A stretch of DNA of 64,000 nucleotides, taken from NCBI GenBank assembly GCA_002104945.1, contig MCFH01000096.1, positions 35,032 to 99,031 of the forward strand. Reading direction: 5' to 3'. Below, piece by piece: positions 668 to 57,880 of the stretch (position 1 is the stretch's first letter; the number at the start of each line of letters is the position of its first letter). This DNA is from Piromyces finnis finn (Eukaryota > Fungi > Neocallimastigomycota). The translations under genes were made by a program, and so were the position numbers. The notes below the pieces were generated by a model that was given only the letters and a program-made list of their open reading frames with translations, was not told the DNA's origin and made no database searches.

Positions 668-678
668 ATTCTTATTGT

Positions 679-733
679 TGTCAAAAAGCGATTTTTTTAT
701 TAAAGAAAAGTGTGGTAAGCACACTAGTTATAT
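679..733 (-). repeat. Family A LTR, U5-end 55 bp (left part of a solo LTR split by element B)
   Basis: Reverse complement of the end of the A LTRs at 33547-34169 and 39623-40245. The sequence resumes at 7420 after the TATAT duplication. Confidence 0.93.
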
Positions 734-1376
734 TGTCAAAATCACAATTCATGAAATTTGACATTTCATGAAATTTCATAATTTTGAATTAATAGTTAAA
801 TTAATTAAAATATTAATTTAATAATATTTTACTAATAATAGTTTATTTAATATAAATATTAATTGGAAAGCTATTTATTATCCGGAGATAAATAGAGTGT
901 AACAATTAATTAATATTAAACAAACCAATTAGTAAAATAAGATTCATTTAAATAATTATTAATATTATTTTTAACAACTTATTAATATCGATATTTAAAG
1001 AAAATTATATTATTATTACTATTATATTTTATTAATATTTATATTTATATTATTATACATGTATAACTTAAATTATATTATTATTATACTTTATTAATAT
1101 CAACATTATATTAAAAATGAAGTATAAATAAGTTGAACAAAGAACAACTTTAAGAAGTTCTTTGTGAGATTATTATACTCATTTTTATATAGTAAATTCA
1201 ATATTTAAAATTAATAATTATCATTTACTTATATTATAAAAATTAAATAAAATATTTCTTAAAAAACTATATTTATTACTCTTTTACTTATAAAAATTTA
1301 TTATTTACTATATAATTAAGCCTATCCTAACCTAGTAGACTTAATTATAATTCTAAATCCACTCTAACTCTTGACA
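734..1376 (+). repeat. Family B 5' LTR
   Basis: Direct repeat of 6777-7419. Confidence 0.96.
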
Positions 1377-1386
1377 ATAATCTCAC
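1377..1386 (+). promoter_or_regulatory. Self-priming PBS of element B
   Basis: ATAATCTCAC is complementary to GTGAGATTAT at 1164-1173 inside the LTR. There is no TGG-type tRNA PBS. Confidence 0.8.
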
Positions 1387-1410
1387 CTTAACTTTGGTTA
1401 CTACCTTAGG

Positions 1411-2511
1411 ATGGCAGAACAAAACTTTGCTAGCTCTTGGCAAACTATGGATGAAGTTAATCAACTCCGCGAAGATGCTAAAACTACTGCTGTAGACATT
1501 ATGAACAGCGTTCAAGAAAACTTTGCTACTATTAGTCAAGTTAAAGACTTTGAAAAACATATTGAATCTCAGTTTCAAGAAATTAAAAGAAATACTGCTA
1601 ATTTCGCACAAGTTTTGGAATCGGTCTCTAACAATATCAACACCATTCAAGAGTATTTAAATAAGAATGGAAAACCAAGTGGTGGTCAGCCAGACCTAAC
1701 CCCTTCAGTTGCCCCATCTACATCTACAAAATATGATTTGGATTTTGATGTAATAATGAGATCAAAATATTCCACTCCAATAAATCAAGTTCCAGACCCA
1801 GGTCTTTTTTCTGGTGATCCTCATGAAACTGAACTATTCTGTCAAATTTGTGAAGATACTTTTAGCACCTATCCTAATAAACATATGATGGAAGAAGCCA
1901 AAATTAATTTTGTTAAAACAAGATTAAGAGGAATTGCTAGAACTTGGTATTTAACAAGATACAGTGGAAATACCCATCCCTCTACTATGTTCGAATTATT
2001 AGGAGAATTAAAAAACGCTTTTCCAAATGTTTCAAGCCGTAAATTAGCTAAGATCAAGCTAAGTAAATTGAAACAAACATATGGAAAAATTAATGAATAT
2101 ATGGAAGAATTTAGATCATATATTCAATATTTTAACTGGGATCAAGAGGCTGTTACTCTTATGTTTTATACTGGTCTTCATCCTAAGTATCAAGAAGATA
2201 TTGAAAGATTAGATGACTTTCCTACTACTCTCGAAGCTATTTTCACAAGATGTATTTTATTTGAACAAAACAATGTTTCAAATAAAAAGTTAAACCAAAT
2301 TAATAATAAAAGCCATGGAAGAAAAAATTCATTTTATAATAACAATAACAATAATTATAATAATAATAGAAACAATTATCAAAAATATCACAATAATAAT
2401 AATAACAATAATAATTTAAAATCTAATTATTCAACTAATAATAATGGTGGTAATAATAATAATAATTATTCCACTACAAAAACCCAAAAAATTTCTTCAA
2501 AAAATTTTTAA
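1411..2511 (+). CDS. gag: Gag (retrotransposon capsid) with Asn-rich C-terminus, family B
   Basis: ORF directly after the PBS. Retrotrans_gag-like segment (FVKTRLRGIARTWY...LKQ...INEYMEEF). Homologous to the 18522-19553 Gag. Confidence 0.85.
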   Translation: MAEQNFASSWQTMDEVNQLREDAKTTAVDIMNSVQENFATISQVKDFEKHIESQFQEIKRNTANFAQVLESVSNNINTIQEYLNKNGKPSGGQPDLTPSVAPSTSTKYDLDFDVIMRSKYSTPINQVPDPGLFSGDPHETELFCQICEDTFSTYPNKHMMEEAKINFVKTRLRGIARTWYLTRYSGNTHPSTMFELLGELKNAFPNVSSRKLAKIKLSKLKQTYGKINEYMEEFRSYIQYFNWDQEAVTLMFYTGLHPKYQEDIERLDDFPTTLEAIFTRCILFEQNNVSNKKLNQINNKSHGRKNSFYNNNNNNYNNNRNNYQKYHNNNNNNNNLKSNYSTNNNGGNNNNNYSTTKTQKISSKNF

Positions 2512-2544
2512 ACAATGAACACCATAAGACGTCAATGGATGTTC
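2502..2544 (+). promoter_or_regulatory. Putative -1 ribosomal frameshift signal (A AAT TTT plus hairpin)
   Basis: In-phase heptamer at the gag stop. The pol frame is -1 and open through to the ATG at 2535. Hairpin GAACACCAT/ATGGATGTTC at 2517-2544. Confidence 0.7.
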
Positions 2545-4868
2545 ATAATACACCAAAAATTATTTATTATAATTTCCCATCTCTAGAGAACAAAGAAAAT
2601 CCCAATTTAAATTCATTTCTAACCTTTAATTCATATATTCCTAAAGAATTTCTAAATAACAACTCTAATTTTATTACCAATTCTCCAATAACCTGTAATT
2701 CAATACTTGATTCAGGTTCCTCATGTAACTTTATTTCTACCATATTTGTAGAAAAATATAATTTAATTAAAAGAAAATTAAAAAACAAATTGATTATAAA
2801 AGGTATTAGTGGGTTTACTACTGATATCAATAATTATGTTTATTTAAAATTTCAATTAAAAATTTTTATCAAAAATAAATTTTATTTTATATCTTTTAAA
2901 GAAAAATTCTTAGTTTCAGAACATATTCCTATGGATTTATTATTTGGAAATAAATTCATGAAGAAATTTAAGATTCATTTTAATTATAAAAATAATCATT
3001 TATATTGTAATAATTTTAAACACTTCAATAATAAGAATTTAAAAATTTTTTCAAAAAATTTAAAAATTTCTCATTCTAAAAAAGATTTTAATAATTCATT
3101 TTCCGATAATACTAATAATAATTCTACTAATTTCTCTCATAAATCTAATCGTCAAGTTAAAGATAATAATTCTACGTCTTTTAATAAGAGTGATATCAAT
3201 TATTTTATCCATTCATTTTTATCTGAAAATGTCGAAAATTTTGAAGATGATGAAGAAAATGACCTAACCCTTATCATGGATGATATCCCTAATGAATATA
3301 AAGATCTTGCTGTTGTTTTCAGCAAATCAAAAGCTGATAAGTTACCTCCACACCGTTTAACTGATTGTAAAATAGTCCTAGAAAATGACGCCACTTTACA
3401 TTATGGACCTATCTATCCTTTATCAAGACAAGAGGAAGAAGCCTTACAAGAATATATTAATGAAAATCTTAAAAAAGGTTTTATTAGGCCCTCTGAATCT
3501 CCTGCAGGTTACCCTGTTGTTTTCCAGAAGAAAAAAGATGGCTCATTAAGGGTCTGTATTGATTACAAAAAGTTGAACGCTGTAACAGTAAGAAATTCGT
3601 ACCCTTTACCTTTAATTTCAGATATCATTGAAAGGGTTAGGGGTTCAAAAATTTTCACTAAATTGGACTTGAGATCAGCTTATAATTTGATAAGAATAAA
3701 AGAAGGTGATGAATATAAGACTGCTTTTAGAACAAAGTTTGGTCATTACGAATATTCAGTAATGCCATATGGATTAAAAAATGCTCCAGCAATATTTCAA
3801 TCATTCATAAATTCAATATTACGCGAATATTTGGATAAATTTGTTATTTTATACATGGATGATATTTTAATTTTCTCAGAAAATCTCAACGATCATATCA
3901 ACCATGTAAGATCTGTTTTAGATAAATTAATACAAAACAACTTATATGCAAAATTTGAAAAATGTGAATTTCATAAAAATGAAGTTGAATTCTTAGGTTT
4001 CACTATTTCAGGTAATGGTATCTCTACTGATCCAAAGAAGATCGAAGCTATTAAAGAATGGCCTAGACCAAAATGTGTTAAAGATGTTCAACGCTTTCTT
4101 GGTCTTTGTAATTATTATAGAAGGTTTGTTAATAATTTTGCCAAAATCGCCAAACCTTTACATAATTTAACTAGGAAAAATGTTAAGTTTCATTGGAATA
4201 AGATATGTGATGATGCTTTCGTAAATTTACAAAATAAATTAATTACCTCTCCCGTTTTAGTTTTTCCTGACACTAATAGGCCGTTTATAGTAGAATGTGA
4301 TGCCAGCAATTTCGCAATAGGTTCCGTTTTATCTCAATATGATGATGATAAAAAACTACATCCTGTTGCTTATTTTTCCAGAAGTTTAAATGATACAGAA
4401 AGGAACTATTCTATTACAGATAAAGAACTTCTTTCTATTAAATCTGCTTTTTCGGCTTGGCGACATCTACTTTTAGGTGCTAAATTTAAAGTAAAGGTTT
4501 ATACAGACCACCGCAATTTACTTTATACTTTAGGTGGAAAAATTCAAAATCAACGTCAACATCGTTGGCATCTCTTCTTTCAAGAATATGATTTTGAATT
4601 AATTTATCGCCAAGGAAGAAAAAATGGTAAGCCAGATAGTCTCTCTAGAAGACCTGATTATAATTCTGGTAATGAACAAATAAAACCTGAGCATATTTTA
4701 GATATAAAAAATGTTAAAAACATTCCATGTTTTGTGGGAATTCTTAGTGACTTTATTGATAAAGTTATCGAATATACAAAAAAGATAATACTGCAAACGA
4801 TATTAGATTATATTTTGCACCAAATAATGCTAATCAAGGTTATTTTTATAGACCTTTTAGAAAAATGA
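2535..4868 (+). CDS. pol: Pol N-terminal part: protease, reverse transcriptase, RNase H (family B)
   Basis: ILDSGSS protease site, YMDDIL RT motif, ECDASN/TDHRNL RNase H motifs. The frame slips at the A-run 4778-4783. Confidence 0.93.
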   Translation: MDVHNTPKIIYYNFPSLENKENPNLNSFLTFNSYIPKEFLNNNSNFITNSPITCNSILDSGSSCNFISTIFVEKYNLIKRKLKNKLIIKGISGFTTDINNYVYLKFQLKIFIKNKFYFISFKEKFLVSEHIPMDLLFGNKFMKKFKIHFNYKNNHLYCNNFKHFNNKNLKIFSKNLKISHSKKDFNNSFSDNTNNNSTNFSHKSNRQVKDNNSTSFNKSDINYFIHSFLSENVENFEDDEENDLTLIMDDIPNEYKDLAVVFSKSKADKLPPHRLTDCKIVLENDATLHYGPIYPLSRQEEEALQEYINENLKKGFIRPSESPAGYPVVFQKKKDGSLRVCIDYKKLNAVTVRNSYPLPLISDIIERVRGSKIFTKLDLRSAYNLIRIKEGDEYKTAFRTKFGHYEYSVMPYGLKNAPAIFQSFINSILREYLDKFVILYMDDILIFSENLNDHINHVRSVLDKLIQNNLYAKFEKCEFHKNEVEFLGFTISGNGISTDPKKIEAIKEWPRPKCVKDVQRFLGLCNYYRRFVNNFAKIAKPLHNLTRKNVKFHWNKICDDAFVNLQNKLITSPVLVFPDTNRPFIVECDASNFAIGSVLSQYDDDKKLHPVAYFSRSLNDTERNYSITDKELLSIKSAFSAWRHLLLGAKFKVKVYTDHRNLLYTLGGKIQNQRQHRWHLFFQEYDFELIYRQGRKNGKPDSLSRRPDYNSGNEQIKPEHILDIKNVKNIPCFVGILSDFIDKVIEYTKKIILQTILDYILHQIMLIKVIFIDLLEK

Positions 4869-6214
4869 ATAAATTCAAGATTCAAAATAATATGATTCTT
4901 TATAATAATTTAATATATATTCCTGAAGCTTTAAGATTAGAAGTACTTATGCGATACCATGAAAATCCTGCTGCTGGTCATTTGGGTATTAAAAGAACTG
5001 AAGAATTAATTACTAGAAACTATTGGTGGCCAAAAATTCATAAAGATGTAACTGAATTTGTTAATTCTTGTGAAACTTGTACTAGAAACAAATTCAATAA
5101 ACACAAAAAATATGGTCCTTTACAACCTTTAGAAACTCCTGATAGACCATGGCGTTCTGTTGAAATTGACTTTTTATGTGGTTTACCTGATTCTAAAGGA
5201 TATACTGTTCTAATGGTTACTGTAGATAGATTTTCAAAAATGATTCATTTAGTTCCTTTTAAGAAAATACCTGATGCTAAACAAACAGCTACAGCTTTTA
5301 TTAAAAATATATTCAAACTTCATGGATTACCTTCTGATATTTATACTGATCGCGGTTCTCAATTTACTAGTGATCTTTGGAATAGTTTAATGGAAGAACT
5401 TAAAGTTAAAACTAAAATTGCTACCACTGATCATCATGAAACGGTCGGGCAAGTTGAAAGATGTAACTCTTTTATTGAACAATATCTCCGCTGTTATTCA
5501 AAGTCCTATTATCATGATGATTGGGTTGAATGGATTCACTTAGCCGAATTTGTTTATAACAATTCTATTAATGAGTCTACCAAACAAAGTCCTTTCTTTA
5601 TTAACTATGGATTCCACCCTCCTGTTGATGATGTTTTCCTTTATGACAAATCCTATACTAATAATAATTTTATTAGAAATGTTTGTGATAATTTTAATTA
5701 TGTTAAAGAAGTTTTATTTAGAGCCAAGGATTTATATAAAAAACATGCCGATAAGAAAAGGATGTCACCTCCTATATTTAAAGTTGGCGATAAAGTTTGG
5801 ATTCAAGCTCCTCCATCCTTTTCTACGGAAGAAACTCCAAAACTTTCTCCTTGTAAATATGGACCCTATAAAGTTTTATATGTTTTGGAAAATAACAATT
5901 ATAAAATAGATATACACAACTCTCCTTTCCCAAAACATCATCCAATCTTCCATATTTCGGAACTTGAACCTTTTATTCCTACCCCTTCAAGATTTTTATC
6001 AAGATCAAAGGATCCCGAATCAATTAAAGACATCATTGAGATTGCGGGATTTCGAACTAATTATAAACTTAAACGGTATGAATACAAAATTAGATACAAA
6101 TACCGTTCTCAATATAATTGGGTTCCTTCTAGTGAAGTTGAAGATAACCCAAGAAACCAAAATATCTTCTTATTATATTTAAAGAACAATAGGAAGCCTA
6201 TTGATATCGCTTAT

Positions 6215-6220
<6 letters not shown>
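4865..6220 (+). CDS. pol: Pol C-terminal part: integrase with GPY/F motif and chromodomain-like tail (family B)
   Basis: H-H-C-C motif, DDE core (IDF...TDRG...VER), KYGPY, YEYKIRY..YNWVP. It is continuous with the upstream ORF if one A is restored at 4778-4783. Confidence 0.92.
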
Positions 6221-6257
<37 letters not shown>

Positions 6258-6776
6258 AGAGAAAGAGAGAGAGAATGAAAAAAAAAATGAGAAAACTATT
6301 ATAATACAAAATTACTTCAATTTAACCCATCACAGATTTAAAAATTGAAATTTCAAAAATTTTTATATTCACTATTTTTTAATTATAAAATTTATTTTTC
6401 AGCTTATTATTATTAATATTTTTAATATCAAATTTTAAAAATTTCAAAAAACATAAAAAACCCTTTAAAATCAAAATTTAAAATTTCAAAAAATTCAAAA
6501 TTTCAATTATGACAGTTGTACAACATAAAAAATTTCAAAAACACATTTTTTATACAATACATATATGTATTTCATAACAAAATTTCATTTTTACCAATTT
6601 TTGACAACTTTTGAAATTTCGCGAAATGGCCATTTAAAATTCATTCCTCCATCCTCATGTGACCATTTCGAAATTTCAAAAATTTTGAAAATATTAAAAT
6701 TTCAATATTTTAAATTCAATATAAGATATTCTACTATCAAAAAATTGTCTAGTATCCAATTTTAGTGGAAGGGCGT

Positions 6777-7419
6777 TGTCAAAATCACAATTCATGAAAT
6801 TTGACATTTCATGAAATTTCATAATTTTGAATTAATAGTTAAATTAATTAAAATATTAATTTAATAATATTTTACTAATAATAGTTTATTTAATATAAAT
6901 ATTAATTGGAAAGCTATTTATTATCCGGAGATAAATAGAGTGTAACAATTAATTAATATTAAACAAACCAATTAGTAAAATAAGATTCATTTAAATAATT
7001 ATTAATATTATTTTTAACAACTTATTAATATCGATATTTAAAGAAAATTATATTATTATTACTATTATATTTTATTAATATTTATATTTATATTATTATA
7101 CATGTATAATTTAAATTATATTATTATTATACTTTATTAATATCAACATTATATTAAAAATGAAGTATAAATAAGTTGAACAAAGAACAACTTTAAGAAG
7201 TTCTTTGTGAGATTATTATACTCATTTTTATATAGTAAATTCAATATTTAAAATTAATAATTATCATTTACTTATATTATAAAAATTAAATAAAATATTT
7301 CTTAAAAAACTATATTTATTACTCTTTTACTTATAAAAATTTATTATTTACTATATAATTAAGCCTATCCTAACCTAGTAGACTTAATTATAATTCTAAA
7401 TCCACTCTAACTCTTGACA
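6777..7419 (+). repeat. Family B 3' LTR
   Basis: Preceded by the purine tract AGTGGAAGGGCGT and followed by the TSD. Confidence 0.96.
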
Positions 7420-7989
7420 TATATTAATTAATAAATATAATACGCTTTCCTATTGAAGGCGTAAAGCTAATAATATTTATATAAAGAAATTTAAATAATA
7501 TTTTTATTTTAGCAATAACTTAATATCAGCATATATTAAGTTATTAAAAATATTAAAATTTTTAAAGTTTTAGGTTTTATAGGAGTTTATAAATTTTATT
7601 AACTTTAAGTTAAAAAAATTACTAACGCTAAAGCTTCGTAATTTTTGTCAATTTTTGTTCTTTTTATACATGAACAATTTTAATTATTACATTTTTTAAT
7701 TTTAATTAATTATTATCTAATTATAAAATATTTAATTTTTATAAATTAATAATTAATATAATTATTGTAAATAGTTAATAAATTTAAATTAAAATTTTTA
7801 ATAATAAAATTTTAATAATTTTAAAAAATTTAATAATTTCAAATATTAGAAATTTTATACTTTGAAATTTTTTAATAAAATTTTAAAAAATAAATTTTTT
7901 CAAATTTTCAAATTTTCAAATTTTAAAAAAATTTTTAATTTTTTCCATGTGTCCAAATTTTTTAAATTTTTATATATGTTATTGTGACA
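7420..7989 (-). repeat. Family A LTR, remainder of the split solo LTR
   Basis: Reverse complement of 33547-34115. Ends ...GTTATTGTGACA. Confidence 0.93.
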
Positions 7990-7995: not shown

Positions 7996-8489
7996 TATAA
8001 AAGGTGTTTTTATAATATTAGTTAATAAGTTATATAAGTTAGTTAATTAAGTTAGTTATTACCTCTCTATACGAGTTAATAACTAAATAAAGTTTTATAA
8101 AAAATAATAAAAGAAAGAAAATAAATATTATAACACGAATAAATACAAGTATATATAAATATTATTATGAAATAAATTTACTTAAATAATTAATTTTAAT
8201 TATATCTTTTATTTATTTAGTATAATTATAATACATTAATTATTATTATAGTTACTAATTTACTTTAATACTAACGCTAAAGTATTTAACGTTAGTTTTA
8301 ACTATACTATTTAACTATATTAGTTTATTTTCTTTACCACTTGATTGGGTGAAGCAAATAAACTTCCTATTTAATTAATAACCATTAATATATGGTTATA
8401 CATATATCTGGCCAATAAATGGTGACCAGAATATATGGTTTCAATTGAAATATTTGTGGGCAAACTTATGGCCACAAATATTTCTTACA
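7996..8489 (-). repeat. Family E solo LTR (diverged)
   Basis: Colinear with 26647-27140, 494 bp. The left terminal TG reads TA. Flanks AATTT and ATTTT. Confidence 0.88.
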
Positions 8490-8494: not shown

Positions 8495-8548
8495 TGTCAA
8501 AAAGCGATTTTTTATTAAAGAAAAGTGTGGTAAGCACACTAGTTATAT
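8495..8548 (-). repeat. Family A LTR, U5-end 54 bp, interrupted by a copia LTR
   Basis: Same sequence as 679-733, broken at the same TATAT. Confidence 0.9.
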
Positions 8549-8879
8549 TGTTAATAATAGAAGACGATTAAAAAATAAATTAAATATTCAAATAAACAAT
8601 TTAAAAATCAAATTTATATTTCAAAAATTATAAAACACTTTTTGTCAGGGATAAATTTAATTTACACTTAAATTTATTTATAAAACTATTTGGTTTTTTA
8701 TAATCTTTTATTTTTTTATATTTATTTTATAATATAAATATTGTAACTTTCTTAAATCTTTTTTTAAAAATAACCAAAGAATAAAAAAATGTAGTACAAT
8801 ATTAATTTATAATTTTGTAAAATACAAATACATAAAAAATACATAAAATATTATTTTTGGAATGTATTTTATTTTCACA
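8549..8879 (-). repeat. Ty1/copia 3' LTR
   Basis: On the minus strand it reads TGTGA...TAACA and is preceded by PPT GGGGGAG (8880-8886), just downstream of a copia RNase H stop. Confidence 0.7.
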
Positions 8880-8901
8880 CTCCCCCAAAGTTATAAATTC
8901 A

Positions 8902-9427
8902 TTATTTGTATTTATATAATAAACTGTCTCTAAATATTTTCATCTTATTTTTATTCAAGTATTTAGTAAAACCATCTGCTAAATTTTCTTCTGATTTTAT
9001 ATATTCTAAACTGATTTTATTTTCTTTAATTAATTCTCTTACTTTATGATACTTAATATCAATATGTTCTGATTTTAGATTAATTGTTTCATTATTTACG
9101 TTATAAATAGTTGCTTGATTACCAATATTGATCTTTAAACATTCTTCCTTTATTTTCAATTCACTAAAGATATTTTTATACCACAAAGCTTGCTTTGAGC
9201 ATTCACAAAACCCATAATATTCTGCTTCGGCGGTTGAAGTTGATACACATTTTTGCAGTTTTGAGTACCAGCTTGTTGGTCCATTTCCTAATAAAAATAC
9301 AAATCCAGTGGTAGACTTTCTTGTTTCCTCATCTCCCCCATAATCTGAATCTACAAAAATCTTCAAATTTAAGTTTCTTTCAAAACGGATTCCGTAATAA
9401 GGATTTTCTTTCAGATATTTGAATATC
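8902..9427 (-). pseudogene. Ty1/copia RT-end and RNase H fragment (truncated)
   Basis: IFKYLK, FVDSDYGG, STTGFVF, WYSKLQKCVSTSTAEAEY, KSEHIDIKYH, ENLADGFTK are copia RNase H motifs. Confidence 0.92.
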
Positions 9428-9686
9428 TGTTGTAACGAGGAACTAGTGATAACCACTAGGTTGTTGTAGGAATTAATAATAAATAAAATAAATAAATAAA
9501 AACACAGAATTAAATAAATATTATTATTTGGATTTTATATTATTTTATTTATTATTATTGAATGTTAATAATAGCTCAAAGAGCATAAAATAAAAAATAA
9601 TTCATGGTTTTTATATTCAATATATCTATTCTAAATTACATGATTGGTTATTACATAAAAATATAACAATATTAATTTTATAAAAA

Positions 9687-9759
9687 GGAAACAGTCAGAT
9701 TCGAACCAATGACAAAATCCATATCAGACTACGACCAGTACCATTGAACTATCAAAGCC
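9687..9759 (-). ncRNA. tRNA-like Pol III unit (A box, B box, T5 terminator) with a decayed cloverleaf
   Basis: Minus strand GGCTTTGA-TAGTTCAATGG-...-GGTTCGAATC-TGACTGTTTCC-TTTTT. A-to-B spacing is that of an intronless tRNA, but the stems do not pair well. Confidence 0.6.
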
Positions 9760-9773
9760 GTTATAACGATACT

Positions 9774-19553: not shown

Positions 19554-19577
19554 TCTAAAGTAGCCACTAAACAGCGG

Positions 19578-40341: not shown

Positions 40342-40351
40342 TATAGTTATT

Positions 40352-48799: not shown

Positions 48800-50085
48800 C
48801 TTGAGTTTTAACGAAGGGCATTCTGTTAAGGAATGAACATAAATAGTTGAATTAGCTAGAATTTTAGGAATTAACCTTCAACTATTTATATTCCTTACTA
48901 GTGTTTAACTCTATTTTTAAAATATAAAAATTATAATATATAATTTTTATACATTTTTCTAGTAATTATTAATATTTTTATTATATAGTTATATTATTTG
49001 TATATAGTTATTTAAGACCTTTATTATTAGTATTAGTATAATTACTTATAATATTTTATACTTATAAATTTTACAAAATTTTACTATTAAAATAGTTATA
49101 GGTATTTTATTATTATTTAAGGTTTATTTTATTAATTAACCTTATTGTATAATATTTTATAATTTGAAATTATGACATAGAATTTAATTATAATTTTTAC
49201 TAAAAGAGGCAACTGTTACACACAAAACAGAAGATACCTCGACAGAAAAATTATTATTTATGTCTAAAAAAGGGCATAATTAATTGAATAATATAATTTT
49301 ATTATATGTCATAATTAAATATATAATATATGATATGCAAAAATGTTACACATATCATAAATTAAAATTTTATTAATTATAAATTAAAAATTTTTCTATT
49401 CAAATATTAAGAGATTATTCATAATATATATTAAGGATTTAATTAATATATGTTACAGTGAATGATCCATATATTATGAATGAAATCAATTTAAATCCTT
49501 AGCTATCCAAAACCATTAAATTTCAAATAATGGATAGTTGGAAAAAGTACGAGGATTTTTGAGAAAAATTTTAAAAATTGAAAAATCAAAAATAAATTAA
49601 ATGAATAAAAATTAAAATTAAATAAATTTTTATTTTTATAACTATTCAAGTGTTTTGTGATATCTTATTTGAACCGTAGCATAATTAATGGTGGAGATAT
49701 CGGGGATAATAATAACATATTGATATCACACTACATTTTTATAGTTACTTTTATATTTATTTTTGTATTATTATTTAATTAAAATAGTTAATAATTCAAA
49801 AGAGGGTTATACTAGTATAATAAAAAGTTATATACTTCAAGGCACAATTAAAATAGTTAATAGAGAGAAATTAATATTGTTAATTGGTGCAGTTAAGGAA
49901 GTATTTTATATTGGTATTACTAGTTTAACTAAAGAGAATAATTATTAGTGTTGTTAATTAAATATATTTCAAATATTGTTGTAATTCATTCTTTTAAATT
50001 CTTATAAAAGAAAATTATTTTTTTTTTAAACTTGTTTCATTCTTTAATATTATTGTAAAATTGTATTTTTATCTTTATTTAAAAC

Positions 50086-51006
50086 TTGTATATAAAAATG
50101 AGTACGGGAGCTGATAAATCTATTGACTTTGCTAAATTAATGAAGGAATTAAAGCATGTCACTAGATTAACCGAAGATAATTTGGACATTAAGACTTGGT
50201 ATAGTCAATTAAAGTATTGGACTATGCTTCAAGATGTTAAAAGTCCAAAAATGGTGTTTCTAGCTTGTTTGTTTACTACTACAGGAACACCAAATGAACT
50301 TATTCAAGAGTTGAATCCTAATAAGGACTTCGAAAGTGATGAAGACAGTGAAGATAGTGATGAAGAAGATGAAGGTAGAGGAAAGAGAAGAGCTCACTAC
50401 CCTTCCCTTAAAAAGATAGTCACTATGTTAGAAGAATTTTATGGAGTAAAGGAAGATCAAATAGAACTTCTCAAGGAGCTTAGGGATATGCGAATCAAAA
50501 AGAATGAAAAAGTAAAAGACTTCAACATAAGGTACCGTTCCTTGTATGTCAAACTAGACAAGAAGCGTAGAAGGAAAGTAGATGTTGAAGATTACTTAGA
50601 TTCCATTGAGCCTAACTATAAAGCCTGGGAAAATGTGCGTAGGGAAAAAGAAGTTACCTTAGCAGAAGCCTACAAGCTTGCCGAAGATGGGGACAGACTA
50701 AATTTAAGAAATCGTCATAAAGCTAACAATTATGATGTATCCACCTCTTCTAACTCTGATAAAAGATATAAAAATAAATATGAAAGAAAAGAAGATAGCT
50801 ATGAAAGGAACAAGAAGCCAACAATAGCGAATTATGGTAATGATAAGAAAGATCCTATGAATGAGTTGACGGAGAAAATGAGAAACTTAACTATCAAAAC
50901 TTGCTACTTTTGCAACGAGAAGGGACACTTTCAATATCATTGTCCTAAACTGAGTGCCATAGTAGAAGAAAACAAACAAAAGGCCAGAAAAGGTCATTTA
51001 AATTAG
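50086..51006 (+). CDS. gag: Gag, family C (second tandem unit)
   Basis: Same protein as 43911-44831. Confidence 0.9.
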   Translation: MYIKMSTGADKSIDFAKLMKELKHVTRLTEDNLDIKTWYSQLKYWTMLQDVKSPKMVFLACLFTTTGTPNELIQELNPNKDFESDEDSEDSDEEDEGRGKRRAHYPSLKKIVTMLEEFYGVKEDQIELLKELRDMRIKKNEKVKDFNIRYRSLYVKLDKKRRRKVDVEDYLDSIEPNYKAWENVRREKEVTLAEAYKLAEDGDRLNLRNRHKANNYDVSTSSNSDKRYKNKYERKEDSYERNKKPTIANYGNDKKDPMNELTEKMRNLTIKTCYFCNEKGHFQYHCPKLSAIVEENKQKARKGHLN

Positions 51007-51455
51007 ATAGTGGGAGAAGAAGCACTCCCAGTAATCCAAAAATAGCTTCACTTAATAACAGTTCAGTTGATAATAATGAGTACTCTGAATATTCTGAGTA
51101 TTCTGACTTATCAGATAATGAAGAAATATCTTCTATTGAAGATAAAATTATTGCTGCAGCTAAAAGAAAAGCTAATGATGAAGAAGACTCTTCCAAGAAA
51201 AGAGTACAAAAATCATTAAAAGAAGACCCAAGACCAATAGTTACCCCTGCTACTAGGAAGCAACAAGAACGTGAACTCAGTAATGAGAGTTTAGAATCAG
51301 GTTCACCATCACAACCCAAGAACCAACTTGACACGTCTGTTCTGAGTCAACCTAATATTAACAAGGAAAAAGAGAAAAGTAAAAGACTCAGAGAAAAACA
51401 AAGAAGTAAACCACCAACCCCCATAAATAAAGACGAAAGAGAAGAAAACGAAGAT

Positions 51456-54400
51456 ATGGAGGTCAGTATTGATACGGAAGATAAAGTAGAAGTAGAAAAA
51501 GCTAAAAAGAAAAATACAGATATTCTACCGACGTTATTGAAAATGACTAAAGATAAAGAAAAAGATAAAACTAAAGAGGAGAAAGTCACACGTAATATCC
51601 AAATGAGAGGTGATACCAGTGATTATGATATTTTTGAAGATTTAAACACAGCTAAATGTGATATTACTTATGGACAGTTATTTAATGTATGCCCAAAAAT
51701 AAGAACACAACTTTCCCAAGGACTAAAGTTAGAGAAAGTACTAGGCAAGGTATCAGGTGCATTAAATAACATAGTAGCTACTACAACCTTATTAAATAAT
51801 ATCAACCATGACTATATAAGTAAGAATAATGAAGCTTCAGAAGAAGATATAGCAATGGTGGATGCGACTGTGGATGGGATACCAGGAAAACTACTGGTGG
51901 ATACGTGTAGTAACTTAAATGTTATTACATCTTCTTTTTACAAAAGACTACCAAAGGAATATGAAGTGGTAGGAATAAGCAAAGGACGTATTCGACTAGC
52001 TACTACTGATGAAGAATACTCTGAGGGTACTGTGGTGCGTATACCAGTTAGAATAGGAGAGGTAGAACTAGTGGTTGACTTCAGAATACTTGAAAAAGAA
52101 GAACCGTTCTATGATATGTTAATAAATTATAAAACTCAAGTAGATAATTTATTATATATAAATCCAGTAACCAAGAGCTTATGTCAAGTGAAAGAAAGAG
52201 GTGTAGTAGAAGAAATAGTACCTATCAATAACCAATATTATAATGAAGGAAAATTGGTATGTACTATTAAGAAGATACCAGATGGAGATACTAAAAGCTT
52301 GAAGTCTATTGAAGGTTTACCACCTCAGGAGTATATACACAATGAGATATTCTTGAACACCTTACCAAAAGATAAACGGAAAGAAATACTCCGACTTTTG
52401 GAAGAAAACTTAGAGATTATTGCGACGTCTTCTGAGGAATTAACGCCTTCTAAATTATCACCACATAAAATAAATCTAAAGGCTGGTGTAAAACCAGTTA
52501 AACAAAGAGCTTATAGGTTAACTAAATTTAAATCAGATATACTAAAAGAAGAGTTAACTAAGCTAATAGAAAAAAAGTTAATAGAGCCGTCCTATTCAGA
52601 ATGGTCCTCCCCTGTAGTTCTGGTTCCAAAACATAATGGTAAGTGGAGAATGTGTGTGGACTATAGGAGAGTGAACGACCTCACGGAAAAGGACTCTTAT
52701 TCACTCCCCTATATTGATGAAATATTTGATAGTCTGAACGGAGCCAAAATATTCACTACTATGGACTTATATTCAGGTTATCATCAAATTTCTATGCATG
52801 AGGAAAGCACTGAGGTTACTAGTTTTACTACCAAGTTTGGTAACTATCAGTTTAAGGTCATGCCGTTTGGGTTAACTAATGCACCAGCAACTTTTCAGAG
52901 GGAAATGAATAAGATATTATTTCCTTTAATAGGAAATTGTGTATATAATTTTATTGATGATGTACTCATATATTCCAAGAGTGTGGAAGAACACATGGAA
53001 CATATTAAGAGAGTATTTGAAATATTGAAAGAAAATGAATTAAAAATAAATCTTGAGAAATGTAGTTTTATGAAGGAAGAAGTAAATGTATTAGGTCACA
53101 GGTTATCTACTAAAGGTTTGAGTCCTTTGGAAAGTAAAATAGAAGCCATAAGGAAGTGGGAAGCTCCAGGAAATATTCATGAGTTACGTTCGTTTTTGGG
53201 TGCAGTAGGATATTATCGAAATTTTATTCCTAATTATTCTCAAGTAACCGCGCCCTTATGTGAGTTATTAAAGAAAAATGTACGATATAAATGGGAAGAA
53301 AAACATGAAAAAGCATTTAAAGTATTAAAAGAAAAACTGATAAACGCTCCCATTTTAAAGTTTCCTGAATTTGATAAGCCTTTTATCATACGTACGGACG
53401 CGTCGTATGAAGGAGTGGGTGGTGTTTTATTACAAGAAGATGAAACTAACAAAATAGAACACCCTGTACATTATATTAGTCGAAGTCTTAGTAAAGCGGA
53501 GAAGAACTATGGAATAACAGAGTTAGAAGGTGCTGCGTTATTCTTTTGCGTGAGTAAGTTAAAACCTTATATTTTAGGAAACCCGTACACTACTATGGTT
53601 TATACGGACCATAAACCACTTTTGGGTTTATTTAAAAATAAGGAACCAAATAGTGCACGTCACAACAGATGGTGTCTTACAGTAAGTCAGTTGGATATTG
53701 ATATTCAATATGATAAAGGAAAGAATAATGTTATAGCTGATGCATTATCAAGAATGAAGAATAAAGAGGAGAAAAAGATACTGGTAACAAAAATTAATAA
53801 AACTAATAATGAAGAGTTATTAACCAAAGTTATTAAGGAGTTTATAGCTGAAAAATTTACTACCGTAGATGGGAAGGACTATTTCGTAGATGGTAATAAC
53901 TTACGTCAGCTAATATCTACTGTAGAAGAAAAAGTAAAGTTAATATTTCAAGCACATAACGTAGGTCATGAAGGTTATTATAAGACTTATCAAAGGTTAA
54001 AGAAAAATTATTATTGGAATGATATGATAGCGGATATTAAAAGAATTATTAGCAAGTGTGAGAAGTGTCAAGTAAATAGACCACAACCTTATCCAGAACC
54101 AACTGAGGACAAAGCTACTAAAGTGGAAGGACCATTTGTACATCTAGGTTTGGATATTATTGGGCCATTACCTAAGACAAGAAATAGTAAACAATATATA
54201 ATAGTCATAGTTGACTATTTTACTAAATGGGTAGAAGCCGAAGCGGTGGAAACTGTTACTTCTCTGGACGTGATAAAGTTTTTAATAAATGTGTTTGCAA
54301 GACATGGGGTACCACAAGTTATTACTACAGATAATGGAACTCAATTTACCTCAGATATGACAAAGATATTTCTAGACCTATATGACGTATATGTGAAGTT

Positions 54401-54974
54401 CACAGTTCCCTACCACCCTGAAAGTAATGGATTAACAGAAAACCGAAATAAGGAAATTGGGAAACTTTTAAGACTTTTAGGGAAAGAAAATAAAGACTGG
54501 GATGAAGTTCTACCTTCCGCGCTTTGGGCCTTAAGAACTACAAAGAATACGGCTACGAAACATTCAAGTTTTGAGCTAGTTTATGGTAGGGAAGACCAAC
54601 AACCTTTTGATATAGCTGCCCGACCCACTAAAGATCAAAACAAGAGTTCCGATGAAATTCTTTTGGAAAAGTTTATAAATCACTACCGATGGACCCTAGA
54701 AGCTGCTGAAAATGTAAAGACGGCTAATAAATATTGGTCTATGAGAAGAGAAGAAAAATTAAGTATGAATCAAGCTAAGAAAATAAAAGTAGGTGACCTA
54801 GTTTTGGTAAGAAACTTCAGTAGAACAAAATTGGAACCTTACTTTGTAGGACCTCTCAAAGTGGTCCAGAAACAGTTCAATACAGTAGTCTTAGCAGACC
54901 CAGAAACTGGAGTACTAATGAACAGAAATGTACATTTCAAAAATGTCGTTAAATATAACTCAGCAACGGAGTAG
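51456..54974 (+). CDS. pol: Pol, family C (second tandem unit)
   Basis: Same protein as 45281-48799. Confidence 0.95.
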   Translation: MEVSIDTEDKVEVEKAKKKNTDILPTLLKMTKDKEKDKTKEEKVTRNIQMRGDTSDYDIFEDLNTAKCDITYGQLFNVCPKIRTQLSQGLKLEKVLGKVSGALNNIVATTTLLNNINHDYISKNNEASEEDIAMVDATVDGIPGKLLVDTCSNLNVITSSFYKRLPKEYEVVGISKGRIRLATTDEEYSEGTVVRIPVRIGEVELVVDFRILEKEEPFYDMLINYKTQVDNLLYINPVTKSLCQVKERGVVEEIVPINNQYYNEGKLVCTIKKIPDGDTKSLKSIEGLPPQEYIHNEIFLNTLPKDKRKEILRLLEENLEIIATSSEELTPSKLSPHKINLKAGVKPVKQRAYRLTKFKSDILKEELTKLIEKKLIEPSYSEWSSPVVLVPKHNGKWRMCVDYRRVNDLTEKDSYSLPYIDEIFDSLNGAKIFTTMDLYSGYHQISMHEESTEVTSFTTKFGNYQFKVMPFGLTNAPATFQREMNKILFPLIGNCVYNFIDDVLIYSKSVEEHMEHIKRVFEILKENELKINLEKCSFMKEEVNVLGHRLSTKGLSPLESKIEAIRKWEAPGNIHELRSFLGAVGYYRNFIPNYSQVTAPLCELLKKNVRYKWEEKHEKAFKVLKEKLINAPILKFPEFDKPFIIRTDASYEGVGGVLLQEDETNKIEHPVHYISRSLSKAEKNYGITELEGAALFFCVSKLKPYILGNPYTTMVYTDHKPLLGLFKNKEPNSARHNRWCLTVSQLDIDIQYDKGKNNVIADALSRMKNKEEKKILVTKINKTNNEELLTKVIKEFIAEKFTTVDGKDYFVDGNNLRQLISTVEEKVKLIFQAHNVGHEGYYKTYQRLKKNYYWNDMIADIKRIISKCEKCQVNRPQPYPEPTEDKATKVEGPFVHLGLDIIGPLPKTRNSKQYIIVIVDYFTKWVEAEAVETVTSLDVIKFLINVFARHGVPQVITTDNGTQFTSDMTKIFLDLYDVYVKFTVPYHPESNGLTENRNKEIGKLLRLLGKENKDWDEVLPSALWALRTTKNTATKHSSFELVYGREDQQPFDIAARPTKDQNKSSDEILLEKFINHYRWTLEAAENVKTANKYWSMRREEKLSMNQAKKIKVGDLVLVRNFSRTKLEPYFVGPLKVVQKQFNTVVLADPETGVLMNRNVHFKNVVKYNSATE

Positions 54975-55860
54975 CTTGAGTTTTAACGAAGGGCATTCTG
55001 TTAAGGAATGAACATAAATAGTTGAATTAGCTAGAATTTTAGGAATTAACCTTCAACTATTTATATTCCTTACTAGTGTTTAACTCTATTTTTAAAATAT
55101 AAAAATTATAATATATAATTTTTATACATTTTTCTAGTAATTATTAATATTTTTATTATATAGTTATATTATTTGTATATAGTTATTTAAGACCTTTATT
55201 ATTAGTATTAGTATAATTACTTATAATATTTTATACTTATAAATTTTACAAAATTTTACTATTAAAATAGTTATAGGTATTTTATTATTATTTAAGGTTT
55301 ATTTTATTAATTAACCTTATTGTATAATATTTTATAATTTGAAATTATGACATAGAATTTAATTATAATTTTTACTAAAAGAGGCAACTGTTACACACAA
55401 AACAGAAGATACCTCGACAGAAAAATTATTATTTATGTCTAAAAAAGGGCATAATTAATTGAATAATATAATTTTATTATATGTCATAATTAAATATATA
55501 ATATATGATATGCAAAAATGTTACACATATCATAAATTAAAATTTTATTAATTATAAATTAAAAATTTTTCTATTCAAATATTAAGAGATTATTCATAAT
55601 ATATATTAAGGATTTAATTAATATATGTTACAGTGAATGATCCATATATTATGAATGAAATCAATTTAAATCCTTAGCTATCCAAAACCATTAAATTTCA
55701 AATAATGGATAGTTGGAAAAAGTACGAGGATTTTTGAGAAAATTTTTAAAAAATTGAAAAATCAAAAATAAATTAAATGAATAAAAATTAAAATTAAATA
55801 AATTTTTATTTTTATAACTATTCAAGTGTTTTGTGATATCTTATTTGAACCGTAGCATTG

Positions 55861-55925
55861 TGTCACAATAACATATTGTAAAATATTGTATTAATAGAAT
55901 AATGTATTTAATTGTGAAGATATTA
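55861..55925 (+). repeat. Stack of LTR termini: A-like start (55861-55876, then 36 bp diverged or unknown) and H start (55913-55925)
   Basis: TGTCACAATAACATAT matches the A LTR start and TGTGAAGATATTA matches the H LTR start. The F LTR follows at 55926. Confidence 0.7.
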
Positions 55926-57880
55926 TGTAAAAGTTTTACTAAACTTATAATTTAATATTAAAATATTAAATTAAATAAAAGGTTAAAAGATAACTAGGTT
56001 AGAAAAAAAAATGTTTTATTAAAATAATCTTAATTGATTTATAAATGAATAATTATATTATGTATTATAGTTAAAATAATTCCTTTTTATTTTATTTAAA
56101 GAATATATATAATAATAAGATTATTTAATAGTAATACTTATTAAGTATTAATAAGATAATAATCTTTACAAAGATTTAATTCATAAAACTATTCTAAACT
56201 ATTTATACTATTTGTAATTTTACATTTAATAATAAAATAACTTTTCAATACATGATTATATTCATAATATATTTTATAATACTTAAACTAAACTTAAGAC
56301 TTATTCCTAATTATTAAAAAATAACTATTGTTTATAATATTCATAATATTAATTATTTCTTAATTATAATATAATTCATTGAATATAATATTAATAATTA
56401 TAATCCTCTAGTTCAAAGATTATAAATTATGTTATTGAAATAATTATTATAAAATAAAGTTAATTAGTTCCGGAAAATAATTTTAATTTAATTAAACAAT
56501 AATTTTTTATACTTTGAGTGAATGATTTATGTTTGATATATCAGGGGTGATCATTCTCTGAATAAACAATTAATCATTGCTAACAAAATATCTTTAAATT
56601 GGAATATCTCGTGAACCAGCAGAGATATTGACATGATTTTAAGATATGTTGTTTGTCTCGAGCGTGGCTTTCTAACGAACTTAATTATAACCAAAATATT
56701 TTTATTCAAAAATCGTCATTCGTTGAGGAGATACGCGTGTTTTTTCTTATTCCATTTTAACGATAAGGGTTAAAGTTATTTATTATAAAAATTATTAAGG
56801 GTTAAGGTCATATTTTAACCTTTTCTTAATTTTTAAATATTTCTTAATAAAATTTTATAATTTATTTGAAAATAAAATATTTGTTGATTTTGAATTTTCA
56901 TAAGTGATTTCACAATTCCAAGTGATCTTGAAATTGTAATTTCACTAGTATTCGTGACATCGCTCCGCCAAAAAAAATCGAATACCAGGCGATTGGAATA
57001 ATATAAAATAAAGTTGTATAATAAAGTATAATTGAAATAAATTGAAGTAGTATATATTAAATATAAACCAATATATAGTTGTATGTGTAACATGAAATAA
57101 AATGGTAACTAAATAAAGAATATATTAAATATAATATGTTGAATATATTGCAATATATGAAATAAAATTAAAAAACATTTTCTTGTGTAACATTCAGTCA
57201 AATTCATAAAATTTTTGAAAGAAATGTTGAAATTTAAATTGATCATAGAGTGAAAAAATTGAAATTCGTACGAAAAATTAAAATTTGAATAAGAAATATT
57301 ATTCCTAGGATATTGAAACACTTTTTATTTTTGAAAAATGTTAACATTTGCTAAAATAATTGAAATTTCAAAAATTGATCAAATAAACTTTAATTAATAT
57401 GATTTTGAAAAAAAAAATTTTTGAAATTTTTGAAAAATTTTTAATAATAAAAAATTTTTTCATTAAATACAAAAAAAATTTTGAACTAAACTTTTTGAAA
57501 AAATGTCACTGAAGACTATTGATTTTAATGATCGATCGAGATGGTGACAATATTGAAATTGATACTATTGAATAGAGAATAAAATAAGCATTAACAACAT
57601 ATAAATATTTGTAATTGTACTGCTAAAATAAATTGAAAATTATTCTCTTTAAATATTTAATTTTCATTATAAAAATTTTGTGTTTTAAATTAAATAAATT
57701 GATAAAATTGTTGGATCAAAAATTATTGAATTGAAATTTAACATTCATAGAAAAAAAATTTTTGAAATTTGTGTTGAAATGTATTAGATGAGTAATACAA
57801 ATTATAATAAAACATAATGTTAGTGAAAGATATTAATAAATTTTTAAAAAAATAAAATTGTTGAAATGCAATTTAAAAAA

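Follow-up and report, generated by a model that had tools for sequence, protein, structure and literature searches.

Evidence for a probable second position of LTR element integration, about 66 bp upstream of tRNA genes, in Piromyces finnis

LTR elements of three closely related families, denoted B, F and H, are located at a nearly constant distance from tRNA genes in the genome of the fungus Piromyces finnis. Comparison of B, F and H edges with tRNA 5' ends in DNA fetched from across the assembly, the measurement proposed by an earlier, sequence-only reading of a 64-kb stretch of this genome, identified 28 tRNA-adjacent LTR edges at 64-68 bp (mean 66.0, SD 0.9 bp; two at 64, five at 65, 14 at 66, six at 67 and one at 68 bp). 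All 28 distal edges that lie no more than 70 bp from a tRNA are confined to one 5-bp window, and the only outlier is an H copy 97 bp from the tRNA (locus L113). The genome-wide data exclude chance as the cause of this pattern. It most likely represents (probability of about 0.8) a real second integration register that is anchored on the tRNA gene, next to a proximal register that is occupied by other families.

Targeting of genes transcribed by RNA polymerase III (Pol III) is the textbook case of safe-haven integration. To our knowledge, only two modes are known for LTR elements, namely the exact start site, as in Ty3 with its relatives and DGLT-A, and the broad nucleosomal window of Ty1. A Ty3/gypsy clade that uses a second ruler, displaced outward by about 51 bp and with an accuracy of 1-2 bp, would represent a third mode and a natural system for the study of how an integrase measures distance from the Pol III machinery. 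Precise, sequence-independent integration at a set distance from a small, portable promoter would also be of practical interest for fungal integration tools.

Nested LTR insertions in a 64-kb window

The stretch of DNA that was analysed as a whole (64,000 nucleotides of contig MCFH01000096.1, hereafter the window) contains several tRNA genes with stacks of LTR elements next to them; no 5S rRNA or U6 gene was found within it. The organization of the first stack is as follows (window positions; strand where assigned).

596-667, minus: tRNA-Cys(GCA) 1 (ARAGORN; Rfam RF00005, 67.9 bits), the reference for the window's sole direct distance measurement
668-678: native 11-bp spacer that separates the tRNA 5' end from the A LTR end, read from the sequence
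679-733, minus: U5 terminal 55 bp of an A LTR (host LTR 1), including the tRNA-side TATAT at 729-733 (BLAST match to A 569-623, 98%)
734-7419, plus: B, a full-length distal Ty3/gypsy element with the U3 end toward the tRNA
7420-7989, minus: rest of host A LTR 1 (A positions 574 to 1), beginning with the second TATAT
7996-8489, plus: solo LTR of the proximal family E between two A LTRs, 93% identical to the LTRs of the full-length E (26647-33542)
8495-8548, minus: second A-LTR U5 end, terminal 54 bp, interrupted at the A nucleotide at which B is inserted in host LTR 1
8549-8642, plus: LTR family N (TGTTAATAATAGAAGACG), initial 94 bp; this insertion lies 54 bp into A
8643-9456, minus: truncated copia-like fragment nested in N (3' LTR at 8643-8879 and the end of the pol ORF)

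The 11-bp spacer and the 55 bp of the A U5 end together put the B edge 66 bp from tRNA-Cys1. The two LTRs of B (734-1376 and 6777-7419) are 99.8% identical and the element is flanked by TATAT target-site duplications of 5 bp, one at 729-733 and the other at 7420-7424. The insertion into the second A U5 end had been assigned to the copia-like element. However, the junction at 8549 is the terminus of family N, and copia, with its own LTR terminus (TGTCAGGGATAAATTTA) at 8643, begins 94 bp deeper than the N start, so that copia was rejected as the element inserted at this site. Family N is represented by at least 97 candidate genomic copies, of which those scored are 96-99% identical and nearly all start from query base 1; a second N copy (L008) lies 51-52 bp into the start of a D2 LTR, at the site used by B in another locus (L069). 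The sequence common to the genomic copies of copia starts only at TGTCAGATAAATTTA, and neither a tRNA nor a common flank was detected at copia 3' LTRs (0 of 20 flanks).

The organization of the remaining stacks is as follows.

15110-20582, minus: H, an element of a distal family, truncated on the 3' side; 5' LTR at 19589-20582, with the U3 end abutting an A fragment
20583-20633, minus: A-LTR U3 end, 51 bp (A positions 52 to 2, 100% identity), the host of H, followed by GAAA
20638-22105, minus: D solo LTR, reverse-complemented, split by F at D positions 49-53
21209-22052, plus: F solo LTR, distal (TGTCACGAATAC...CTTTTACA), 53 bp from the D U3 end
22108-40245: three full proximal elements in a stack, D (22108-26639), E (26647-33542, minus) and A (33547-40245)
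40260-40424, plus: tRNA-Ser(GCT) and tRNA-Met(CAT), with the A U5 end 14 bp upstream and the duplication AGAAA
42562-42633, minus: tRNA-Cys(GCA) 2 (Rfam coordinates)
42649-55857, plus: T, a proximal tandem array (LTR-internal-LTR-internal-LTR; LTR of 858 bp) with the U3 end 15 bp from tRNA-Cys2
55861-55876, plus: first 16 bp of an A-type U3 end
55877-55912, plus: first 36 bp of LTR family K, in a position that reconstructs to about -31
55913-55925, plus: first 13 bp of an H LTR, which reconstructs to ~67 bp from the tRNA
55926-60748, minus: F element; 3' LTR (55926-56959) reverse-complemented, then pol (integrase ORF at 57881-59224)

The H terminus TGTGAAGATATT, reverse-complemented, ends at 20582, and the F solo LTR, which belongs to a family with 346 genomic candidates, is bracketed by AAAAT duplications (21204-21208 and 22053-22057). 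The GAAA(T) separators between the D, E and A elements are the mark of serial hits at one site. The offsets originally read from the window are all numerically reproduced: 66 bp from tRNA-Cys1 for B, 54 bp into the A U5 end, 51 and 52 bp for the two H insertions, and 53 bp for F. The presumed A-like start at 55861 indeed consists of 52 bp followed by 13 bp of H and then by F, but it is a composite of 16 bp of A and 36 bp of K. The same 36-bp start of K recurs in four other loci (L009, L012, L028 and L087), and K termini 28, 30 and 31 bp from tRNAs point to a register near -30. The edge of the F copy at 55926 reconstructs to ~80 bp, as had been noted, and is the single exception in the window.

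Distance to the tRNA gene and position within the host LTR

The tRNA genes at the distal edges include those for tRNA-Arg, Cys, Ser (two anticodons), Ala, Gly, Glu, Trp and others. In every case, the gap between the distal edge and the tRNA consists of the terminal 44-55 bp of another LTR and a spacer of 11-22 bp. The host termini are of at least 13 kinds, with both U3 and U5 ends used. Among the distal edges with a known proximal terminus within 90 bp, 35 of the 42 host-LTR offsets are 44-54, and the other seven either have K as the host (36-38, i.e., 30 + 36) or are spurious matches to short patterns. The SD of the offset within the host LTR is 3.0 bp, compared to 0.9 bp for the total distance, and spacer length and offset compensate each other (r = -0.95), which places the origin of the ruler at the tRNA and not in the host LTR. 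For example, the spacer of 22 in host family R is accompanied by an offset of 44, and the offset into an intervening K is 36, the total being 66 each time. These numbers bear out the proposal of the sequence-only reading that distance is more important than the sequence of the target.

The two registers are also apparent in a library-free test, in which the count of ACA ends by distance peaks at 11-16 bp and 64-67 bp only, without a periodic second or third peak out to 125 bp. In a sample of 46 unique tRNA loci that were picked from the Rfam hit list independently of the elements and cover few tRNA species, 12 have an F or H edge at 64-67 bp. About 36 of these loci hold a proximal LTR and all 12 distal insertions are among them, an association that is not significant (p ~0.05); all distal insertions observed are in loci that already carry a proximal LTR, with none at a tRNA locus free of LTRs, and a proximal LTR could conceivably be required. 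Families E, A, D, T, T2, M, P and Q lie 11-18 bp from the tRNA, with no edges at 60-70 bp, and there are no B, F or H edges at less than 60 bp. Thus, the Ty3-type start-site position (~12-16 bp from the mature 5' end) fits E, A, D, T, M, P and Q but not B, F and H. The partition of the niche between families that had been suggested from the window holds in this respect, with no crossover, but does not extend to copia, which had been placed among the distal elements.

Most of the solo distal copies have clean 5-bp duplications. The orientation of H and F is biased, with the U3 ends toward the tRNA, strictly so in the case of H. For a substantial share of the B copies, neither an LTR end nor a tRNA could be recognized in the flanks, e.g., in copies located within the coding sequence of other elements (L075). 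Some positions within the same host LTR were hit more than once (three insertions each at AAAAT in the A U3 end and at offset 51 in M3, as well as repeated use of sites in the A U5 end and the E end), which indicates that the ruler is combined with a local sequence preference of 1-2 bp.

Given that every distal insertion seen sits in the end of another LTR and that identical sites in the ends of A, E and M3 are hit repeatedly, these families could be thought to recognize LTR ends, through their sequence, structure or a factor bound ~50 bp inside, with the distance to the tRNA being a by-product. Such a preference is highly improbable considering that the hosts are unrelated termini, U3 and U5 alike, that the offsets compensate the spacer to a nearly invariant sum, and that this sum is retained when K intervenes. 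Hardly better are the prospects of survivorship, whereby integration is broader and only the copies near -66 are tolerated and retained. Insertions closer to the tRNA could be disfavoured by the requirements of promoter function, and some B copies are indeed located elsewhere, but precision of 1 bp on the far side is beyond the reach of selection because positions at 70-120 bp carry no penalty; furthermore, the B LTR copies are 98-100% identical and hence too young for much purging. The least credible explanation is that the pattern is artefactual and was produced by redundancy in the assembly or by segmental duplication of a small number of loci. Duplicated contigs are present in the assembly (e.g., C228/C214, C185/C42/C37 and C184/C4), but the deduplicated set still includes 27 events, distinguishable by the tRNA, the host LTR, the spacer and the sequence of the duplication.

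Integrases of the distal families and a possible tether

The LTRs of B (TGTCAAAA...CTTGACA, duplication TATAT), F (TGTCAC...TTTACA, duplication AAAAT) and H (TGTGAAG...CTTAACA, 5-bp duplications in most solo copies) have the TG...CA termini and 5-bp target-site duplications of Ty3/gypsy elements (Metaviridae). The order of pol domains in B, H, A, E and T, with RVP/RVT_1/RT_RNaseH followed by Integrase_H2C2/rve/SH3_Tf2-1 (Pfam), is also that of Ty3/gypsy. The integrases of B, F and H are 63-69% identical to each other, compared to 37-41% identity to A and E, the start-site relatives with which they coexist, and 24-27% to T. Although the distal elements had been regarded as different families, B, F and H are, by these identities, close relatives that form one clade, and a single inherited trait accounts for the distal site better than convergence of independent families. 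Such natural matched pairs of integrases could help to identify the residues or linkers that determine how far from TFIIIB integration occurs.

The B integrase is homologous to that of Ty3, residues 3-380 aligning with residues 1075-1454 of the Ty3 integrase (7Q5B; E = 2e-49). An AlphaFold model of the B integrase C-terminus, built from only 4 sequences (pLDDT 72; 82-88 in the last domain), contains an SH3-like barrel followed by three strands and a helix. The best fold match of this model is again 7Q5B (E = 1.5e-4); superposition of chromodomains and chromo-shadow domains on the model yields TM values of 0.7-0.77, albeit with Foldseek E-values of only ~0.07-0.17, and no chromo domain is called by Pfam in the integrase C-terminus. 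The distal integrases are predicted from this model to share with Ty3 a C-terminal module that consists of an SH3-type domain and a chromodomain-like fold. The same module is present in the proximal A and E integrases, so that the module alone cannot account for the difference in register.

The C-terminal module of the Ty3 integrase (the C-terminal domain and a vestigial chromodomain) contacts TBP and Brf1, and TFIIIB occupies the region between -15 and -32 relative to the start site (bioRxiv 10.1101/2021.07.27.453949). By analogy, the distal integrase complex is likely to be tethered to the Pol III pre-initiation complex (TFIIIB/TFIIIC) via its C-terminal module, in a geometry such that the active site would come to lie upstream of TFIIIB. 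The 5-bp staggered cut would then span about -62 to -66 irrespective of the sequence struck, the target being nearly always an older LTR end of the 11-18 bp families. Subsequent proximal insertions would displace the distal copies from the tRNA and leave behind LTR-end stubs of 44-55 bp. The distal register would thus account for the recurrent ~50 bp stubs in the tRNA-linked transposon stacks of this AT-rich genome, an explanation that could aid the dating and ordering of nested insertions.

The position at -66 might instead be set by a nucleosome, the distal clade using a fixed surface of the first well-positioned nucleosome upstream of the Pol III complex, in a Ty1-like manner, and not TFIIIB. 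Yeast tRNA genes have strongly ordered upstream nucleosomes, with two sites per nucleosome used by Ty1 (PMC5911963), the modelled chromodomain-like fold would be compatible with this route, and secondary positions could be represented by the two exceptional copies, F at ~80 bp in the window and H at 97 bp. We nevertheless consider this unlikely: the SD of 0.9 bp is far tighter than the nucleosomal patterns of Ty1, the periodic peaks are missing out to 125 bp, the predicted module is the one used by Ty3 on TBP and Brf1, and the orientation of H is strict. Returning to the Pol III tether, a more general reading, to which we would give even odds, is that several integrase lineages in one genome each have their own ruler on the pre-initiation complex, at ~12 bp for the Ty3/gypsy families E and A, ~15 bp for T, D and M, 66 bp for the B/F/H/N clade, and ~30 bp for K. 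Integration at 66 bp would then follow a mode that has not been described before, namely docking of a Ty3-like C-terminal module to the upstream face of TFIIIB, at a distance of five helical turns from the start-site register and, for H and F, in a fixed orientation.

Comparison with known tRNA-targeting elements

Ty3 of Saccharomyces cerevisiae and the Ty3-like elements Tj1, Tyl3/Ylt1/Tyl6 and Tca8 resemble B, F and H in that all are Ty3/gypsy elements with 5-bp duplications and a fixed position upstream of tRNA genes regardless of the target sequence. However, all Ty3/gypsy tRNA-targeting elements covered by a 2018 review are inserted either at the Pol III start site or no more than ~10 bp away from it, corresponding to 6-33 bp when counted from the mature 5' end (PMC5911963, Table 1), in contrast to the 64-68 bp of B, F and H; the Ty3-like position is held here by A, D, E, T, M and others. 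Ty1 of S. cerevisiae is similar in being inserted further upstream of Pol III genes than Ty3, with both elements present in one genome, but it is a copia-type element that is tethered via the Pol III subunit AC40 and is spread over a ~1 kb window with ~80-bp nucleosomal periodicity, not at one 5-bp site. B, F and H combine a gypsy-type pol with a single sharp distal peak, whereas the copia family found here shows no association with tRNA.

The non-LTR elements TRE5-A of Dictyostelium discoideum and NLTR-B of Polysphondylium pallidum, similarly to B, F and H, are inserted upstream of the TFIIIB region and not at the start site; an interaction with TFIIIB has been reported for TRE5 ORF1 (PMC5911963). 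These elements are of the L1 type and rely on target-primed reverse transcription without an integrase, as opposed to the LTRs and integrase of B, F and H, and their positions, 40-54 or 39-64 bp (PMC5911963), are broader and ~15 bp nearer the tRNA. The arrangement of the stacks is also reminiscent of DGLT-A, a Ty3/gypsy element of dictyostelids with serial insertions at tRNA genes of a compact, AT-rich genome, in which younger copies displace older ones (PMC5006619); DGLT-A, however, is found 13-33 bp upstream (mean 15), at the equivalent of the proximal and not the distal register of Piromyces.

A second integration register upstream of tRNA genes

In addition to the proximal register, in which LTR edges lie some 11-18 bp from the tRNA 5' end, a second, tRNA-anchored register is real and is used by one clade of Ty3/gypsy elements, the distal families B, F and H. 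LTR copies of these families were located across the whole Piromyces finnis assembly (56,455,805 bp, 232 contigs) and their flanks were retrieved, as were the upstream regions of 57 tRNA genes picked from an Rfam search regardless of transposons. Removal of duplicates left 87 distinct tRNA upstream regions; the sampled DNA amounts to about 0.3 Mb of the 56 Mb assembly, and the tRNA sample spans few tRNA species. The genome-wide distance measurement proposed by the sequence-only reading, run here on these sampled flanks, yields a cluster at 64-68 bp. Specifically, the 28 B, F and H edges found no more than 70 bp from a tRNA lie at 64 (2), 65 (5), 66 (14), 67 (6) and 68 (1) bp from the first tRNA nucleotide (mean 65.96 bp, SD 0.92); this set consists of tRNA-adjacent copies, many B copies having flanks that fit no recognised class, and contains two near-identical copies of one event. 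Another H copy (locus L113) is 97 bp away from its tRNA. In the transposon-blind sample, an F or H edge is present at 64-67 bp in 12 of 46 distinct tRNA loci, and a count of ACA ends per distance, which employs no element library, peaks only at 11-16 and 64-67 bp.

Closely spaced tRNA pairs, 8-10 bp apart, are common (loci L101-L108, L120, L125 and L129-L149) and include Glu(TTC) before Arg(TCT) and Gly(TCC) before a tRNA starting with GCCTGTTTGG. For such dicistronic pairs, the distance was taken from the first tRNA, and both registers are measured from it.

All known tRNA-targeting retrotransposons are listed in a 2018 review (PMC5911963). The upstream-integrating Ty3/gypsy elements among them all insert at or near the start site, in contrast to the 64-68 bp of B, F and H, and those known to insert further out are non-LTR elements only, namely TRE5 (40-54 bp) and NLTR-B (39-64 bp), which lie closer to the tRNA and spread more broadly (PMC5911963). 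Thus, the novelty is a Ty3/gypsy clade at 64-68 bp, tRNA targeting by such elements at the start site being already known. A literature search on LTR/tRNA targeting in anaerobic fungi or Piromyces returned nothing relevant.

Distance, host sequence and alternative explanations

Outside its four tRNA genes, the window (G+C 16-43%) consists almost entirely of nested LTR retrotransposons, and all its large ORFs show the Ty3/gypsy domain order. The families, recovered through self-comparison and reading of junctions, and the tRNA genes are as follows.

596-667, minus strand: tRNA-Cys
734-7419: B
15110-20582, minus strand: H
21209-22052: F, solo LTR
22108-26639: D, non-autonomous
26647-33542: E, a start-site (proximal) family
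33547-40245: A, full copy, 623-bp LTR
40260-40341: tRNA-Ser
40352-40424: tRNA-Met
42562-42633, minus strand: tRNA-Cys
42649-55857: T, a start-site family, tandem array
from 55926, minus strand: F, second copy

All offsets previously reported for nested insertions are present in the window sequence. B, flanked by TATAT duplications, interrupts an A LTR in reverse-complement orientation; the break is 55 bp from the U5 end, and that end lies 11 bp from tRNA-Cys1, so that the B edge is 66 bp from this gene. Another A U5 stub, 54 bp long (8495-8548), breaks off at the A nucleotide used by B. The insert at this stub had been taken for copia, but it is the terminus of another LTR family, N (8549-8642, 94 bp), with at least 97 candidate copies in the assembly, the scored ones aligning from the first base of N; copia starts at 8643. 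H adjoins 51 bp of the A U3 end (20583-20633), and F, with AAAAT duplications, is located at positions 49-53 of the D U3 end. The 52 bp that begin at 55861 lead into 13 bp of H, after which F starts; the supposed A-like start at this position is A for 16 bp, whereas the remaining 36 bp belong to LTR family K.

In every case, the gap of 64-68 bp consists of the native spacer next to the tRNA and a terminal piece of another, host LTR. At least 13 host termini are involved (A U3 and U5, D U3 and U5, both E ends, T2, M and its variants, P, Q, R, S, and K within D). Where the terminus could be identified (21 cases), the spacer measures 11-22 bp and the insertion point lies 44-55 bp into the host LTR, each with an SD of 3.0; spacer and offset are inversely correlated (r = -0.95), and their sum is constant within about 1 bp. 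The clearest case of compensation is family R, located 22 bp from tRNA-Arg, with H inserted 44 bp inside R; likewise, a K edge at 30 bp goes with F and H insertions 36 bp inside K. The distance is thus measured from the tRNA gene rather than from the host LTR, which bears out the earlier proposal that distance outweighs sequence, and recognition of the host LTR by the distal families is contradicted by the same compensation. A known proximal terminus lies no more than 90 bp from the distal edge in 42 flanks, and the offset is 44-54 bp in 35 of these. Superimposed on the tRNA ruler is a finer site preference of 1-2 bp: insertions of B, N and, in two cases, F share one A U5 nucleotide, and B has entered AAAAT in the A U3 end three times.

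It is possible that a positioned nucleosome sets the distal site, but this fits poorly with the 1-bp precision, and periodic peaks are lacking. Survivorship of insertions could also leave a peak near -66; it cannot, however, sharpen the far side of the peak, and the B copies are 98-100% identical. Assembly redundancy, as a source of a repeated register, does exist: near-identical stretches are duplicated on small contigs (C228/C214, C185/C42/C37, C184/C4 and C181/C141), being either redundant haplotigs or recent segmental duplications, and copy counts are inflated as a consequence, but duplicates were removed before the tally.

Distal copies also stack on each other at the register (e.g., E positions 1-53/54, then F, then H), a pile-up that mirrors the proximal stacking upstream of tRNA-Ser, where elements are separated only by GAAA(T). 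No empty, LTR-free tRNA locus with a distal insertion was found among the sampled loci. The sole candidate for such a target (L052, L057, L109 and L128) was rejected, its 66-bp gap comprising 44 bp of the R start and the 22-bp spacer; at these loci, R (TGATATAATTTTATAATAATC) lies beyond the usual proximal range of 11-18 bp.

The distal clade and its integrase

The distal users had been regarded as separate families. Their integrases, however, are 63-69% identical to each other, compared to 37-41% identity with those of A and E (54.5% identical between themselves) and 24-27% with that of T, and a similar ATAATCT motif is present just inside the 5' LTR in all three; judging by these sequences, B, F and H are one clade. 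Accordingly, the common register is most simply explained by a single inheritance rather than by convergence of independent families. N is placed with this group on two nested cases only. The U3 end of H faces the tRNA in 8 of 8 cases of the host-terminus set, in 8 of 8 direct cases and in both window copies, and that of F in 15 of 17 direct cases and in 11 host-terminus cases against 4 of opposite orientation; the orientation of B is unbiased.

The homology between the B and Ty3 integrases (7Q5B, E = 2e-49) extends into the C-terminal SH3-type domain. In a structure model of the last 162 residues of the B integrase, an SH3-type barrel is followed by three strands and a helix (pLDDT 82-88), and the structure that this model resembles most is the Ty3 integrase chain in the intasome bound to TFIIIB. 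The model can also be superposed on isolated chromodomains and chromo-shadow domains (TM 0.7-0.77, with weak Foldseek E-values); no Pfam chromodomain was found in the integrase tails. The integrases of A and E carry the same module (30-33% identical) with a shorter linker, so the presence of the module alone does not explain the register. The Ty3 version of this module makes contact with TBP and Brf1, TFIIIB itself occupying -15 to -32 relative to the start site (bioRxiv 10.1101/2021.07.27.453949). The yeast Pol III start site is located about 12 bp upstream of the mature tRNA 5' end; with this spacing, a cut at -62 to -66 would fall some 50-54 bp upstream of the start and beyond the upstream side of TFIIIB. 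The distal register is 51-52 bp, or about five helical turns, from the proximal one. By analogy with Ty3, the distal clade is proposed to use the same docking partner, the Pol III pre-initiation complex, but to bind it in another geometry.

Relatives are present in metagenomes: nine contigs (L176-L184; JAEEGJ, JAEEGK and JAEEGL accessions) encode integrases 66-72% identical to that of B. All nine end within LTRs and carry neither flanks nor tRNAs; several end in identical 127-bp overlaps, which indicates that they are collapsed assemblies of related elements from other gut fungi. B-LTR sequence was found in an animal gut metagenome run, and the stretch that was tested occurs in runs labelled animal gut and faeces metagenomes; the metagenome reads gave only short, collapsed repeat contigs that speak neither for nor against the junctions.

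Niche partition, other registers and nested arrays

Distances of LTR edges from the tRNA, by family
E: 11-13 bp (one at 16)
A: 11-14 bp
D: 13-15 bp
T and T2: 14-16 bp
M: 14-18 bp
P: 15-16 bp
Q: 14-17 bp
R: 22 bp
K: 28-31 bp

Among the sampled loci, termini of these families are absent from 60-70 bp, and B, F and H edges from all distances below 60 bp. The partition envisaged by the sequence-only reading thus holds, without crossover, with A, D, E, T, T2, M, P and Q as proximal and B, F and H as distal families, but not for copia as a distal member: copia-like genomic copies share sequence only from TGTCAG(A/G)ATAAATTTA, that is, from the true terminus at window position 8643, and 20 of their 3'-LTR flanks are mutually unrelated and contain no tRNA (0/20). 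K (TGTAAAATATTGTATTAATAGAATAATGTATTTAAT; 55877-55912 and loci L028, L119 and L150), with its edge 28-31 bp upstream of tRNAs, is inserted into D or A ends at a depth of 15-16 bp and, in one case, into the 3' part of a tRNA gene, the upstream member of a dicistronic pair; K may represent a third register near -30, which would fall within the expected TFIIIB footprint.

The stack upstream of tRNA-Ser (20634-40259) reads A fragment, GAAA, D solo LTR, D full copy, cAGAAAT, E, GAAA, A, AGAAATTATTATTA and the tRNA, the GAAA(T) separators marking repeated hits at a single site 14 bp from the gene. A, which has identical LTRs and is nearest the tRNA, is the youngest element in this stack. The two D elements are arranged head to head (U3-U3), 2 bp apart (22105-22108), with no matching duplication at their junction; D (4.5 kb) contains gag- and protease-like ORFs and lacks reverse transcriptase and integrase, hence its non-autonomous status. 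The T array (42649-55857) has an LTR-internal-LTR-internal-LTR organization with a period of 6175 bp and 99.96% identity, and TTG is present at both flanks and at the internal junction. At 15109/15110, a T copy (10485-15109, plus strand) is joined to H (minus strand), both truncated within the pol/integrase regions; taken with the stubs of A at 8495 (U5) and 20633 (U3), this junction points to rearrangement or deletion inside one old A LTR.

Finally, a tRNA-like stretch on the minus strand (9690-9775) contains A-box-like (TAGTTCAATGG) and B-box-like (GGTTCGAATC) motifs and a non-pairing acceptor stem; neither ARAGORN nor Rfam, even at E = 1, calls a tRNA at 9690-9765. As at real tRNAs, a solo LTR lies upstream: that of T2 (9775-10480) ends some 13 bp from this stretch, which may be a pseudo-tRNA that still attracts integration.
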